From: Macrostomum lignano | Taxonomy: Eukaryota | Reading direction: 5' to 3' | Assembly (NCBI GenBank): GCA_002269645.1 | Contig: NIVC01001103.1 | Span: 264,847-328,846 of the forward strand | DNA length: 64,000 nucleotides | Part shown: one piece after another, positions 1 through 61,983 of the stretch | Layout of the letters: every line of letters begins with the position of its first letter | How positions within the stretch are numbered: position 1 is the stretch's first letter | Notes under the pieces: generated by a model | What the model was told of the DNA's origin: nothing | What the model saw: only the letters and a program-made list of their open reading frames with translations | Database searches by the model: none | Position numbers and translations under genes: made by a program

Positions 1-209
1 ATGCGACACACACACACACACAGTAAAGGAACCAGTTCTTCTTCTTTGACTTATCTCGGCTGCCCTAGTGTAGCAGTCTGACAATGTTGTAGAATAACTT
101 ATAGCAGTTGAATTCAATCACCCGCATAGATTAGGACACCATTGATAGAAGATCCGCCCCTCACCAGTCTAACAACACAAATTAATCCGCGGCATTCTCA
201 CAGATCAAA

Positions 210-3200
210 ATGTCAGCTGACGATAAAAGCAACAAGCCGAGCGAGCTCAAGGAGGCCGAGGGCCTGCTGGAGCCAGAGGTGCAGGTTTTGCACCAGACCA
301 GGGCGCAGAGGTTCTGCAAATTCGTCAAGGACAACCTGTTTATGACTAGCACCATCGTCGGGGTGCTGCTGGGATTTATCCTCGGCGTGGCGATCCGAGC
401 GGCCACCGATCCCGAGGACAGGACTGCGCGGTTCATGCTCTGGCTCAGTGAGTCCGGCCTGTGTTGCACTTTTGACAGCTAATTATTTGAGCTCTAGTTG
501 GGCAAGGCAATGTCAGTTTCACGTAAGCCAGGGGTAGGGAAAATGTCAGATAACAAGCGAATCAATGTCAGACAATGTCAGTTACCGGGTAAAGCAAGAT
601 GTCAGACAATGTCAGATACCAGGTAAAGCAAGATGTCAGACAATGTCAGATACCAGGTAAAGCAAGATGTCAGACAATGTCAGATACCAGTAAAGCAAGA
701 TGTCAGACAATGTCAGATACCAGGTAAAGCAAGATGTCAGACAATGTCAAATAACATGGGTAAAGCAAGATGTCAGACAATGTCAGATACCATGGGTAAA
801 GCAAGATGTCAGACAATGTCAGATACCAGTAAAGCAAGATGTCAGACAATGTCAGATACCATGGGTAAAGCAAGATGTCAGACAATGTCAGATACCAGTA
901 AAGCAAGATGTCAGACAATGTCAGATACCATGGGTAAAGCAAGATGTCAGACGATGTCAGATACCAGTAAAGCAAGATGTCAGACAATGTCAGATACCAT
1001 GGGTAAAGCAAGATGTCAGACGATGTCAGATACCAGTAAAGCAAGATGTCAGACAATGTCAGATACCATGGGTAAAGCAAGATGTCAGACGATGTCAGAT
1101 ACCAGTAAAGCAAGATGTCAGACAATGTCAGATACCATGGGTAAAGCAAGATGTCAGACAATGTCAGATACCAGTAAAGCAAGATGTCAGACAATGTCAG
1201 ATACCAGGTAAAGCAAGATGTCAGACGATGTCGGTGCGAATTCGCTCTGATCAGATGTCAGACAATAATTACCAAGCTATGTCAGATACAATCTAGGACA
1301 ATGTCAGGCAAATATTGAATGCTTGAAATCGCACCCCGTTCCAGACATGCCCGGTGACTTGTTCATCCGATTGCTGAAGCTGACAATCCTGCCACTCATC
1401 GCGGCCAATGTAGTTGTCGGTGAGCTCTCCTTGATTAAACGACTTTGAGTCTAAACTTTAGCCATTGTAAAACTTTAATTGAATAATTGCCAACATCCAT
1501 GCTGCAGTGTCGGCCAATTTGGATCCCAAAGTGAACGGCAAGATTAGCCTGGTGTCGTTTGGCTACATCATTGTGGCCAACGTGGGCTCCGCTCTGATTG
1601 GTTGCGTGACCGCCCTGCTTATTCAGCCAGGTGAGACCATGATTATCAGCGGTGCCAAGACCGTATTCTTTGAGGCCCAATCTCTCTTACTTATGATGGT
1701 TCGGCCATAGACATCAGCACAAAGAAGGATGCCAGCAGCAAACTCCTGTCATAGAAATCATGCTTAAGCATTGACTTTCATGTCACAGATTCAATGCACC
1801 CCAGCCAGATGGGCCACTCCAGAGTCCAGCCGCTTGGCCACAGCGCGAAAACCCCAGGCTTCAGATATCTATCTATCCATCTATCTATCTATCTATCTAT
1901 CTATCTATCTATCTATCCATCTATCTATCTATCTATCTATCTATCTATCTATCTATCTATCTATCTATCTATCTATCTATCTATCTATCTATCTATCTAT
2001 CTATCTATCTATCTATCTATCTATCTATCTATCTATCTATCTATCTATCTATCTATCTATCTATCCCAAGCACTTTGAAGAGAAATTCGACCCTTAGAAT
2101 ATTTCACAAATTTTAAGTACTGCATGAATGCCTTTGATACCAACTGACCGTCTTTTCCACTTAGGCTTCATTTGTTATTCCGCACTGTGGAATTTACCTA
2201 ACCCTAGCCATAAGGGTTTTTGAGATTCCGTTTTAAAAATTGCAGCCGTTTCCATCAAGCGATCCGTGTTTTACATGCAGCCAGAATTGCCTTTCCAAAC
2301 GCAATTAGCAAAACTTGTCACAACACGCACCTGGGCATCTGAATTTAAACCCGTAAAATTTCTTCAATATCCATCAGCTTCTTAGCACCTTTCCAAGCTT
2401 CAACATGCGAATGTCACCGGTTTTCGCTGCAAAATACCATTGCCATTGAAAGTTTTTGACGTTGTGAAATTTCGGTCTAGTTCTGAAATGTGGAATTTAG
2501 TTCTGAAATGGGGAATTTAGTTCTGAAATGGGGAATTTAGTTCTGAAATGGGGAATTTAGTTCTGAAATGGGGAATTTAGTTCTGAAATGGGGAATTTAG
2601 TTCTGAAATGGGGAATTTAGTTCTGAAATGGGGAATTTAGTTCTGAAATGGGGAATTTAGTTCTGAAATGGGGAATTTAGTTCTGAAATGGGGAATTTAG
2701 TTCTGAAATGGGGAATTTAGTTCTGCAATGGGGAATTTAGTTCTGAAATGGGGAATTTAGTTCTGAAATGGGGAATTTAGTTCTGAAAAACTGAAAACTT
2801 CTTATCTCGCTAATGCATTTTGCAGCAAAATTTGCACAGATTAATATATATGCAGTCTGCGTGGCTGTAAGCTGCGGCTCTTCTTTCGTGAGAAGCAGAA
2901 CTGCGGGGCTCCTGCACTGGGTCGTGTGTTTACAATTTTTACACACAGTTCAATGTCCAAATGGCAAGCGAACTAAGTAGCGTGGACTTTTTCCAGGCAA
3001 CAGCGGGGGTCACGAGGGGTCAGGGAGAAGCCAGTTATGCTATCAAGCTGGTTTCCGGTCCGGCATGGCTTTAAGGTTCAAGACTGCAGTTTTAAAGAAC
3101 TGAAGACATTTTTTTCGAATGCGCAGGCCGATCGTGAATGATAATTATGCCCTTGGATCTGCCGCTGCGAGCCTCATATCCAATTAACATTGTCTGGCTG

Positions 3201-59423: not shown

Positions 59424-61971
59424 TCACAGGCGCAGGTAGCCGCCTTCTGCCTGGCCTCCGTCTGGGAAGCCGTCAATCAGCTGGGAGCCCAGCGGTTGCA
59501 GCTCATGGCCGGAGCCGCCAAGCGCCCCACTGCCGAACGAGGAGCCCAGGCCGCCGCCGCCGCCGCACCGGCTGGACGAGCTGAGGCAGGATTCGCTGCC
59601 TTCGTCCGCTTCACCCACTGACGATAGCGAAGCCTGCGCCGGCTGATGCTGCAGCTCCTCGGATTCGGCAACTGCGGCGTCGGCGGAGGCCAGCAGTTCG
59701 CCGGAGTCCGGGCAGCGCAGTCGATGGGCCCGGACCTCGCCAATCAGCTGACTGCGCCGGCTAATCAAGTGCGACACCGTGGACTCCAGCTGGGCATTGT
59801 CGGACTCCAGGCCGCGTACAGCCTCAGTGAGGCATTCGATGCGATCTTGGCGCTTCTTGCGGCACTTGGCTGCGGCCACTCGATTGCGCTCGCGGCGCTT
59901 CTCCCGGCGCTGCAACTCCTCCGGCTGGCTCTGGCGGAGAAGGGCAGGCGGACAGGCCAATGCGCGACACAAAGCACAAACATTTCAAACAAAATGCTAA
60001 CCGTTTTTTCAGGACATTAGGTGGGTGCACACGGGGGAACCAGCGTGGTAGCGCCATCATGGAGGCGCTTAGCCTGGCAAGGAGGCGCCATCGTGGGGGC
60101 GCCAGCAACAGCAGTAAGTACTCTACCCTCTCCAGCCATTCATTCAGCAAACACCCTACCCTCTCCAGCCATTCATTCAGCAAACACCCTACCCTCTCCA
60201 GCCATTCATTCAGCAAACACCCTACCCTCTCCAGCCATTCATTCAGTAAGCACCCTACCCTCTCCAGCCATTCATTCAGCAAACACCCTACCCTCTCCAG
60301 CCATTCATTCAGCAAACACCCTACCCTCTCCAGCCATTCATTCAGTAAGCACCCTACCCTCTCCAGCCATTCATTCAGTAAGCACCCTACCCTCTCCAGC
60401 CATTCATTCAGCAAACACCCTACCCTCTCCAGTCATTCATTCAGTAAGCACCCTACCCTCTCCAGCCATTCATTCAGTAAGCACCCTACCCTCTCCAGCC
60501 ATTCATTCAGTAAGCACCCTACCCTCTCCAGCCATTCATTCAGTAAGCACCCTACCCTCTCCAGCCATTCATTCAGTAAGCACCCTACCCTCTCCAGCCA
60601 TTCATTCAGTAAGTACCCTACCCTCTCCAGCCATTCATTCAGTAAGTACCCTACCCTCTCCAGTCATTCATTCAGTAAGTACCCTACCCTCTCCAGTCAT
60701 TCATTCAGTAAGCACCCTACCCTCTCCAGCCATTCATTCAGTAAGCACCCTACCCTCTCCAGCCATTCATTCAGTAAGCACCCTACCCTCTCCAGCCATT
60801 CATTCAGTAAGCACCCTACCCTCTCCAGCCATTCATTCAGTAAGCACCCTACCCTCTCCAGCCATTCATTCAGTAAGTACCCTACCCTCTCCAGCCATTC
60901 ATTCAGTAAGTACCCTACCCTCTCCAGTCATTCATTCAGTAAGTACCCTACCCTCTCCAGTCATTCATTCAGTAAGCACCCTACCCTCTCCAGCCATTCA
61001 TTCAGTAAGCACCCTACCCTCTCCAGCCATTCATTCAGTAAGTACCCTACCCTCTCCAGCCATTCATTCAGTAAGCACCCTACCCTCTCCAGCCACTTAT
61101 TCAGTAAGCACCCTACCCTCAAAAGATCATTAATTCAGTAAGCGCAGCTACCCTTTCTAATAATTAATTCAGCAAGCGATGCTCTCCAATGCTTTATGAC
61201 GCTGCCCCAACCCAACCAATTAGGGATCAGGCTATCCCAAGCAACTACAAAGTAAAATTAAAGCAATATAACCTAACCAACCTTAGCCGTTTTACTCCAA
61301 CATTTCCGACCTCCGCCAGTGCCGGTGGCCGCGCCGCTTTGCTGCTTCTTCGACGACCGACTTTTTGTTAAAGCTCCGCTGGTGCCGCCATCAACAGCTG
61401 CTAGCAGATTCGAATCTCCATCATCGCCAGTTTCATCAATCTCGTCTTCATCGTTATCGTCTTGATCAACATCTTCGTTGAAATGGGCGCCTAAAGGCTC
61501 TGACTGGACGGTAGGCGGCGGCGGAGGCTGCTGCTGATGGTGCTGCAGCAGGGGCTCGGTGAGCGGCAGCTGTAGCTGTTGCACATAGTGCTCTTGCGGA
61601 TGCTGGAAATGATGCTGATGATGCTGATGATGCAAATGATGAGGCATATCTGCATAGCCTTGGCCGCCTAACAATGGGCCATTGGAAAGTACAATTGGCT
61701 TCAGTATGAGCCCCGGCTCAAGCGACTGCTGGTGCGGCTGGTGATGATGCGGCTGCTGCACCGGATGCTGCTGGTAGCAGCTAGCCGCCGATAAGTAGGC
61801 TCCGCCGCTGCTGCCGCCGCTGGCGTCGATGCAAAAATTTGCCGAATTGTATCCCGCATTAATATTGGTTGTCATGACAACAATTCCGCCGCTGCCAACG
61901 CCGGAACTGGGAACTGCTGCGGAGCCGCCGATTTCAGTTGGGCTTCGGGCAGCAGAGTCGGAGTAGATGAC
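59424..61971 (-). CDS. bZIP transcription factor A, ATF3-like with His/Gln-rich and acidic N-terminus; complement(join(59424..59930,61282..61971)); first ATG at 61875 gives 366 aa
   Basis: Canonical bZIP EELQRREKRRERNRVAAAKCRKKRQDRIECL followed by L-L-L-L-L heptads and HRLRC (Fos/ATF3 HxxxC). Donor AAG|GTTGGT and acceptor CTCCGCCAG|AGC, phase 0. By eye it is closer to ATF3 than to Fos. Confidence 0.88.
60112..61130. repeat. 33-bp minisatellite CAGCCATTCATTCAGTAAGCACCCTACCCTCTC, ~30 copies (intron of bZIP A)
   Basis: Direct reading; source of ORFs 59960-61141. Confidence 0.97.
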
Positions 61972-61983
61972 CTGAAATTCGAA

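Follow-up and report, generated by a model that had tools for sequence, protein, structure and literature searches.

In-frame 3' splice acceptors before coding sequences in a Macrostomum lignano gene cluster: a probable mixed set, with a spliced-leader AUG plausible for one or two genes

The spliced leader (SL) of a flatworm can end in AUG, and a coding sequence (CDS) that begins in frame just behind a 3' splice acceptor raises the question of whether its translation starts in the leader. We examined this question in a stretch of 64,000 nucleotides (nt), here called the window, which covers about positions 264847 to 328846 of scaffold NIVC01001103.1 in the Macrostomum lignano assembly Mlig_3_7 (window position + 264846 = record coordinate, in agreement for three genes). 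The window contains an SLC1-type transporter gene on the plus strand and, on the minus strand in the order of transcription, bZIP A, bZIP B, bZIP C, and two paralogous genes (paralogs 1 and 2) that had been labeled NTF2. A protein search with the concatenated N-terminal exons of the five genes discussed below matched two M. lignano proteins at 100% identity, both encoded on this scaffold, while hits to three of the genes were displaced by low-complexity words. In an initial annotation, the CDSs of SLC1, paralog 2, paralog 1, bZIP C, and bZIP A were placed 6, 12, 81, 48, and 96 nt behind in-frame acceptors at 204, 30369, 33993, 39420, and 61971, and the genes were proposed to be trans-spliced and to use the AUG of the leader. 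We found that these five acceptors are probably a mixed set brought about by several phenomena. A start at the SL AUG is plausible for only one or two of the genes, more so for bZIP A than for paralog 1, and the proposal is without positive support for any of the five.

It has been reported that M. lignano has a single 35-nt SL, CGGTCTCTTACTGCGAAGACTCAATTTATTGCATG, ending in ATG (PMC8629364), as the initial annotation had supposed for the source organism. In this species 30-39% of genes are trans-spliced, and the top trans-splice acceptor motif is [T/C]TNCAG (YTNCAG) (PMC8629364; PMC5730564). The use of the 3'-terminal AUG of a flatworm SL as the initiator methionine is established by the work of Cheng, Cohen, Ndegwa & Davis (2006, J Biol Chem 281:733), as cited in PMC9851317 and PMC12582326, and the leader ending in a start codon has been remarked for Macrostomum too (PMC10468722). 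According to the account of Cheng 2006 in PMC9851317, 28% of the trans-spliced mRNAs of Schistosoma mansoni have the SL AUG in frame, about the chance level, and more than 40 cDNAs need the SL AUG; in-frame enrichment is thus not expected. No leader sequence or SL RNA gene was found in the window or in the paralogous loci.

The five coordinates, distances, and phases were all confirmed in the sequence, and the frame was open at all five joins when an ATG was put before each exon at its acceptor and the product was translated. In-frame, open distances from acceptor to ATG in genomic DNA cannot by themselves identify SL-dependent starts, because introns in the 5' untranslated region (5'UTR), ATG-bearing mini-exons, and chance give the same picture. 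Indeed, as evidence for an SL-supplied AUG the pattern does not rise above chance: two of the three probable mRNA 5'-end acceptors (those of paralog 1, bZIP A, and paralog 2 in the paralogous locus L005, scaffold NIVC01000778) are in frame, where one-third is expected (P ~0.26). Acceptor 39420 is in phase by necessity because it is an internal coding exon junction, the 6-nt spacing of SLC1 is a 1-in-3 event, in paralog 2 the in-frame AG had been picked although a nearer AG is out of frame, and bZIP B, a sixth gene, lies outside the pattern. Thus, the distances of the initial annotation hold, whereas its five cases are not independent, since 39420 is an internal coding junction and 204 is a 5'UTR acceptor. 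At least four of its five AGs are real 3' splice sites; 30369 lies inside annotated paralog transcripts. The "partial" flag of deposited proteins was also considered as evidence for an SL start and rejected, as it means only that there is no in-frame stop between the 5' end of the transcript and the first ATG.

Paralog 1 and bZIP A retain acceptors at which an SL would be joined. In the window, the deposited CDS begins 15 nt (paralog 1) or 21 nt (bZIP A) after TTTCAG, in diverged paralogs it begins 6 nt after, and the annotated 5' ends lie 4-21 nt past TTTCAG in all paralogs of both genes. The probability that TTTCAG ends within 25 nt of a given point is 0.012 per site in the non-repeat part of the window, which indicates that 33993 and 61971 are real 3' splice sites and no accident beside a promoter. 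The Mlig_3_7 annotation pipeline maps reads end-to-end and cuts transcripts at mapped SL sites (PMC5730564); end-to-end mapping loses leader-containing reads, so that transcript models would be expected to start a few bases past the exon boundary, as is seen. Besides, no upstream exon for paralog 1 or bZIP A was found in any annotation set or in three paralogous copies. We also scanned the DNA ahead of paralog 1, bZIP A, and bZIP B for first exons of the form ATG...GTRAG in phase 0, and the bZIP C mini-exon was the only convincing one; within the 3-6 kb before bZIP A and in the interval from bZIP C to paralog 1, no such candidate came with a TATA element.

SL trans-splicing is the single most likely partner at 33993 and 61971, for each of which we hold it to be slightly better than an even chance. 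The two genes would each start at a real TTTCAG^ 3' splice site (the caret marks a splice junction) without a known upstream partner, and the SL would be joined there. In such an mRNA the AUG of the leader would come first, in frame, and would lengthen paralog 1 by 28 residues or bZIP A by 33 residues; neither gene would depend on it, as a good genomic ATG lies downstream in both. We infer from the sequence both the splice partner of the two sites and the AUG that would be translated. As a whole, the reading that bZIP A, and perhaps paralog 1, is SL trans-spliced at its in-frame TTTCAG, perhaps together with the window's paralog 2 at 30369, and that the leader AUG starts the extended proteins is a tentative one, to which we give only about one chance in three.

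The extensions themselves speak differently for the two genes. In a leave-one-gene-out codon-frame test, the 81-nt stretch of paralog 1 scored -1.6, in the lowest 5% of windows of its own CDS and typical for open non-coding windows, and it resembles a 5'UTR more than a coding sequence. Read from the first ATG, paralog 1 has the layout of paralog 2, with a Met, a few basic residues, and a hydrophobic segment. The 96-nt stretch of bZIP A gave an ambiguous score (3.0). Its frame stays open for 75 codons, through the acceptor and into an antisense repeat resembling a short interspersed element (SINE), so the open frame is not specific to the exon. Between paralogous scaffolds there are five substitutions in the two extensions (four synonymous and one non-synonymous), too few for power; in the bZIP A extension there are three in 96 nt, a density not below that of the flanking non-coding DNA. 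When bZIP A exon 1 was compared with the full library by HMMER, the protein that it belongs to was the sole hit.

The next reading in strength, though an unlikely one, is that paralog 1 and/or bZIP A is unspliced at the 5' end, so that transcription starts near TTTCAG, the upstream open frame is 5'UTR, and the first genomic ATG is the start. The scatter of the annotated ends favors it, as those in ML2 (an earlier M. lignano assembly whose gene models served as an independent comparison for exon joins) lie at -6 or further and those in Mlig_3_7 at +4 to +6, +13 to +15, and +19 to +21. The TATA-like TTATATTTAG upstream of the paralog 1 site, the non-coding score of its 81 nt, and the Met followed by a hydrophobic segment in paralog 2, and likewise in paralog 1 from the first ATG, point the same way. 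Against it, TTTCAG occurs within 25 nt at both genes and at the paralog 2 site, with the low probability per site given above, and no TATA element precedes bZIP A, whose upstream flank is the antisense SINE-like repeat.

A little less probable still is that paralog 1 and/or bZIP A has unannotated upstream cis exons, coding or not, that were missed because the introns are full of tandem repeats. In fact, bZIP C has such an architecture in the same cluster and was missed entirely by the deposited annotation, the introns here hold kilobases of tandem arrays, and transcriptional units have been reported to break in repeat-rich regions (PMC8629364). The searches described above speak against such exons, both the absence from every annotation set and from the three paralogous copies and the lack of a first-exon candidate with a TATA element in the regions scanned. 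Finally, it is most improbable that SL addition at the named acceptors, with translation from the leader AUG, holds for all five genes or for most of them. In its favor are the terminal ATG of the SL, the established use of the SL AUG for initiation in flatworms (Cheng 2006, through PMC9851317 and PMC12582326), the start codon noted in the Macrostomum leader (PMC10468722), and the five of five joins that are in frame and open. Against it, independent models give SLC1 and bZIP C upstream exons in cis, deposited paralog 2 mRNAs contain the sequence that precedes 30369, the near-chance framing reported for S. mansoni (PMC9851317) leaves no enrichment to be expected, and bZIP B does not match.

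For SLC1 and bZIP C, the independent models thus show the very alternative that the initial annotation had named beside trans-splicing and leader-AUG use, which are not upheld for these two genes. The ML2 model of SLC1 (P0006; A0A1I8I4F8) reads ...VFWQTFQ^IKMSAEDK across acceptor 204, and AG 202-203 therefore serves as the cis acceptor of a 5'UTR intron. The residues before IKM map to an exon 1.66 kb upstream, outside the window (8267-8341 of locus L002, donor CAA^GTAAAT). This exon with its GTAAAT donor occurs in both paralogous loci, and a length difference of 1 nt between them within it speaks for a non-coding exon. The deposited SLC1 protein has 535 amino acids, begins MSADD, and carries no partial flag. 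By the standard behavior of TransDecoder, a "complete" CDS implies an in-frame stop in the 5'UTR. Since the SLC1 CDS was deposited as complete, whereas that of paralog 2 was called partial merely for want of a stop before the Met, the SLC1 transcript has an upstream in-frame stop; a transcript starting at 204 without such a stop would have been called 5'-partial. An alternative, stronger donor of the same upstream exon, after L002 position 8403 (GTAAGC), gives an in-frame 5'UTR stop, and the contiguous genomic sequence before the ATG would also supply one (TAA 183-185). In our model, 204 would be the acceptor of a 5'UTR intron with its donor exon just beyond the window, translation would start from ATG 210, and the 6-nt spacing would be in frame by chance.

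In bZIP C, the ML2 model P0014 (UniProt A0A1I8I3V8) begins MTQQQNDQDHQQEYRRLVMEEL, which equals the MT^QQQ join of a mini-exon to 39420. The TATA box TATATAAA lies about 140 nt (141 nt) upstream of the ATGACG of this mini-exon. The exon block LVMEELKCKILL aligned without gaps to LVREELSCQIQL of bZIP B, from LV[R/M]EEL through the bZIP domain (E=4e-11), with Met19 of bZIP C facing an Arg of bZIP B within the conserved block. This bears out the initial annotation in that the conserved block begins before the first in-exon ATG. The coding start, as also claimed there, lies upstream of that ATG, as the block is conserved and the 48 nt score as coding (7.1 in the codon-frame test, in the top 1% of open non-coding windows). 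Acceptor 39420 is, as we read it, an ordinary phase-0 coding intron boundary: bZIP C would have its own TATA-box promoter and a first exon ending ATG ACG^GTAAGC, and its protein would begin MT-QQQ from a genomic AUG. The 5'UTR also contains an upstream open reading frame (uORF) of 15 codons (40146-40099, minus strand), whose TGA overlaps the main start (ATGA). Translation of stress-regulated bZIP mRNAs such as ATF4 is known to be controlled by uORFs in the 5'UTR.

Several points weigh against our division of the genes. The argument that a complete SLC1 CDS means a longer 5'UTR assumes the standard TransDecoder behavior, and it is from ML2 gene models that the cis exons proposed for SLC1 and bZIP C are taken. 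Flatworm acceptors often serve both cis- and trans-splicing (PMC12582326), so minor alternative SL addition at 204 or 39420 is possible. The training set of the codon-frame test comprised only about 1100 codons, all from this window, which weakens the test. Furthermore, two ML2 models of paralog 1 (P0007 and P0011) begin FQRAQRR, 6 nt upstream of the acceptor, and these starts and the TATA-like TTATATTTAG make transcription start at the paralog 1 site a live alternative.

For paralog 2, deposited sequences speak against the acceptor assigned to it. The deposited paralog 2 proteins of the paralogous copies start PAQPVRLM (P0008) and YPAQTVRLM (P0012), both upstream of 30369. The paralogous mRNAs therefore include CCTGCTCAG, which splicing at 30369 would remove, and so speak against 30369 as the SL acceptor of paralog 2. 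In L005, the sequence reads TTTCAG^CATATCC, with the exon start at 9999 and the deposited CDS start at 10001, which is the first full codon. This 5' end fits the expected output of a pipeline that cuts transcripts at mapped SL sites (PMC5730564). The TTTCAG^ acceptor is located 26 nt before the ATG and is out of frame, and on scaffold NIVC01002495 the annotated start of paralog 2 falls 3-5 nt inside the site that is the acceptor on NIVC01000778. The mRNA 5' end in L005 would be this acceptor, where the leader AUG, being out of frame, would open a 19-codon open reading frame (ORF) overlapping the true paralog 2 start. In the window's copy, if expressed, 30369 or 30361 might act as acceptor. We also observed that four consecutive bases differ here (30379-30386 of the minus strand versus 9993-9999 of L005), TTCA in NIVC01000778 and GCAT in the window and NIVC01002495; with GCAT, the AG of the probable SL acceptor is lost in the window's paralog 2 copy and an out-of-frame upstream ATG is created.

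Paralogs 1 and 2 lie on the same strand, separated by a spacer of about 1.25 kb that includes a 657-bp tandem array, and the AATAAA between them is 219 nt before the paralog-type acceptor in L005. On NIVC01000778 the two genes are named Mlig027278.g1 and Mlig027278.g2, i.e., with one transcriptional-unit prefix. In strand, repeat-adjusted spacer, AATAAA, YTNCAG, and transcriptional unit, paralog 2 agrees with what defines the downstream gene of an SL-resolved operon in M. lignano, and from these features it looks like the downstream gene of a two-gene operon with paralog 1. As for the identity of the two proteins, neither matched a Pfam family at E<=0.01, and no homologue was detected outside M. 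lignano. The AlphaFold model of paralog 2 (mean pLDDT, a per-residue confidence score, of 47) has helices followed by four strands and is too poor to test the NTF2 label. The automatic UniProt names of the ML2 models of the paralogs (CRAL-TRIO and START; 28043-33993, minus strand) disagree.

The deposited bZIP B protein starts at a Met just ahead of the basic region (MQERRR...). Before it lies an in-frame exon that holds the LVREELSCQIQLKLL block common to bZIP C, and there is no in-frame ATG after the TGA at 47622-47620. The sole pyrimidine-preceded AG (CTCAG^CAAAG) is out of phase for a leader AUG. The start of bZIP B could lie in an unannotated exon or at a near-cognate codon such as CTG at 47607, or the gene could be decaying. 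Besides, in both bZIP B and bZIP C (47655-47717 and 40187-40243, minus strand) the identical 10-mer ATTGGCTTGG, an inverted CCAAT, comes 47-53 nt after a TATA box, which suggests that these tandem duplicates have a common promoter or 5'UTR element.

The joins at 33993 and 61971 would give the same configuration as the system of Cheng 2006, in which the leader ends in AUG and an in-phase acceptor with an open frame makes the leader AUG the first in the mRNA. In contrast, trans-splicing in S. mansoni was seen on cDNAs and translation was tested, whereas trans-splicing at the sites here is predicted, and a usable genomic ATG is present in paralog 1 as well as in bZIP A, unlike the class that requires the SL AUG. 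The studies of the M. lignano SL and operons (Wudarski 2017, PMC5730564; Ustyantsev & Berezikov 2021, PMC8629364) deal with the same organism and the same assembly, and their YTNCAG motif covers the TTTCAG that lies before paralog 1, before bZIP A, and at the site of paralog 2 on NIVC01000778, although leader-AUG use is outside the scope of those papers. The ORFs begun in a leader that are termed slORFs (slORFfinder, PMC9851317) cover both in-frame N-terminal extensions and out-of-frame short ORFs, and the predicted 19-codon ORF of paralog 2 in L005 would be of the second kind; PMC9851317 is based on ribosome footprints, whereas the ORFs here are predicted from sequence. Ordinary cis-spliced first exons describe SLC1 and bZIP C fully, although the coding part of the bZIP C first exon is very short (two codons) and a uORF overlaps its ATG.

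Tandem arrays with units of 4-70 bp make up about 40 kb of the 64 kb, leaving about 24 kb of non-repeat sequence; they show strong G/C strand asymmetry and fill introns and spacers. Two copies of a repeat of about 310 bp, 84% identical and in the same orientation, flank bZIP A (59007-59309 and 61986-62296, plus strand), and one of them ends 14 nt from the TTTCAG acceptor. Its 5' part is tRNA-like, and it is probably a tRNA-derived SINE; ARAGORN and Rfam scans of the repeat gave no match. Head-to-head with paralog 1, an unannotated region (34511-34680) contains a TATAAAAG box (34513-34520, plus strand) followed about 95 nt later by an ATG (34615) with a 20-codon ORF, and this element could be what remains of a transposon, a divergent promoter, or a gene that is short or spliced. 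Neither paralog 2 nor bZIP C has a deposited annotation on NIVC01001103.1, and paralog 2 is annotated only on paralogous scaffolds. Scaffolds NIVC01002495, NIVC01000778, and NIVC01003977 are paralogous to NIVC01001103.1. Exact-protein look-ups for transcript contigs with the leader matched the genome assembly only, with no record for P0013 and P0014, and no mention of the gene identifiers Mlig024519, Mlig028619, and Mlig024039 was found in the literature (paper supplements and full text).

Table 1. Coordinates of genes, acceptors, start codons, promoter elements, and repeats in the window
Feature	Position	Strand	Source or remark
SLC1-type transporter (Mlig028619.g1, PAA72232), CDS	210-10030	+	Pfam SDF match
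SLC1 5' end: AG 202-203, exon start 204, ATCAAA, ATG 210-212	202-212	+	Sequence reading
Large tandem array	3285-7009
Large tandem array	12156-26337		14 kb, 15/16-mer
Large tandem array	47847-53897		6 kb, 16-mer
Paralog 2 CDS: exons 30357-30211 and 28513-28043, intron a 23-mer tandem array	28043-30357	-	212-amino-acid model identical to PAA57383
Paralog 2 ATG	30357-30355	-	12 nt from 30369
Paralog 2 nearer AG	exon start 30361	-	4 nt from ATG, out of frame
Paralog 2 in-frame AG	30371-30370, exon start 30369	-	Sequence
Annotated paralog CDS start	equivalent of 30378	-	Paralogous copies
Position homologous to TTTCAG^ of the third paralog: TGCATG^ in the window	exon start equivalent 30383	-	Alignment
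AATAAA, the only one between the paralog 1 stop and the paralog 2 start	30612-30617	-	Sequence
Paralog 1 body: exons 33993-33553 and 31932-31624, intron with a 28-mer tandem array	31624-33993	-	Sequence
Paralog 1 (Mlig009831.g1, PAA72233, "partial") 5' end: TTTCAG 33999-33994, exon start 33993, first ATG 33912-33910	33910-33999	-	Sequence
Paralog 1 deposited CDS start	33978	-	Annotation
TATA-like TTATATTTAG	34029-34038	-	36-45 nt upstream of the paralog 1 acceptor; kept in paralogs
bZIP C exons 38746-38639 (basic region, acceptor as in P0014) and 37934-37692	37692-38746	-	bZIP_1/bZIP_2 match
bZIP C exon 2 (QQQNDQ...PPQ), acceptor AACAG^CAGCAGCAG, exon start 39420	39271-39420	-	Sequence and P0014
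bZIP C in-exon ATG	39372-39370	-	48 nt from acceptor; within the conserved LV(M/R)EEL block
bZIP C intron, 676 nt, filled by a 19/38-mer tandem array	40096-39421	-	Sequence
bZIP C first exon with promoter: ATG 40102-40100, ACG 40099-40097, donor GTAAGC from 40096	40097-40243	-	Sequence and P0014
bZIP C 10-mer ATTGGCTTGG	40196-40187	-	Sequence
bZIP C TATA box TATATAAA	40243-40236	-	Sequence
bZIP B (PAA72234, 120 amino acids)	43698-47717	-	Exons 47619-47407 (motif), 47089-46982, 43973-43698
bZIP B in-frame stop TGA	47622-47620	-	Directly before the motif exon
bZIP B ATTGGCTTGG	47664-47655	-	Sequence
bZIP B TATATA	47717-47712	-	Sequence
bZIP A body: exon 1 61971-61282, intron with a 33-mer tandem array, second coding part ending at 59424	59424-61971	-	Sequence
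bZIP A (Mlig024519.g1, PAA72235, "partial") 5' end: TTTCAG 61977-61972, exon start 61971, first ATG 61875-61873	61873-61977	-	Sequence
bZIP A deposited CDS start	61950	-	Annotation
bZIP A paralog CDS start	equivalent of 61965	-	Annotation

The main value of this check is negative, and if a leader start is true for bZIP A or paralog 1, the gain is a practical point of annotation only: the deposited 5'-partial proteins would be complete once the leader Met is added, and pipelines that trim the leader including its final ATG would systematically misstate N termini in M. lignano. Flatworms have been known to initiate translation at the SL AUG since 2006, and bZIP A and paralog 1 would be further examples of this and not a new mechanism. 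They would, however, be the first gene-level SL-AUG examples in a free-living, early-branching flatworm (Macrostomorpha), which would carry the mechanism beyond the parasitic groups.

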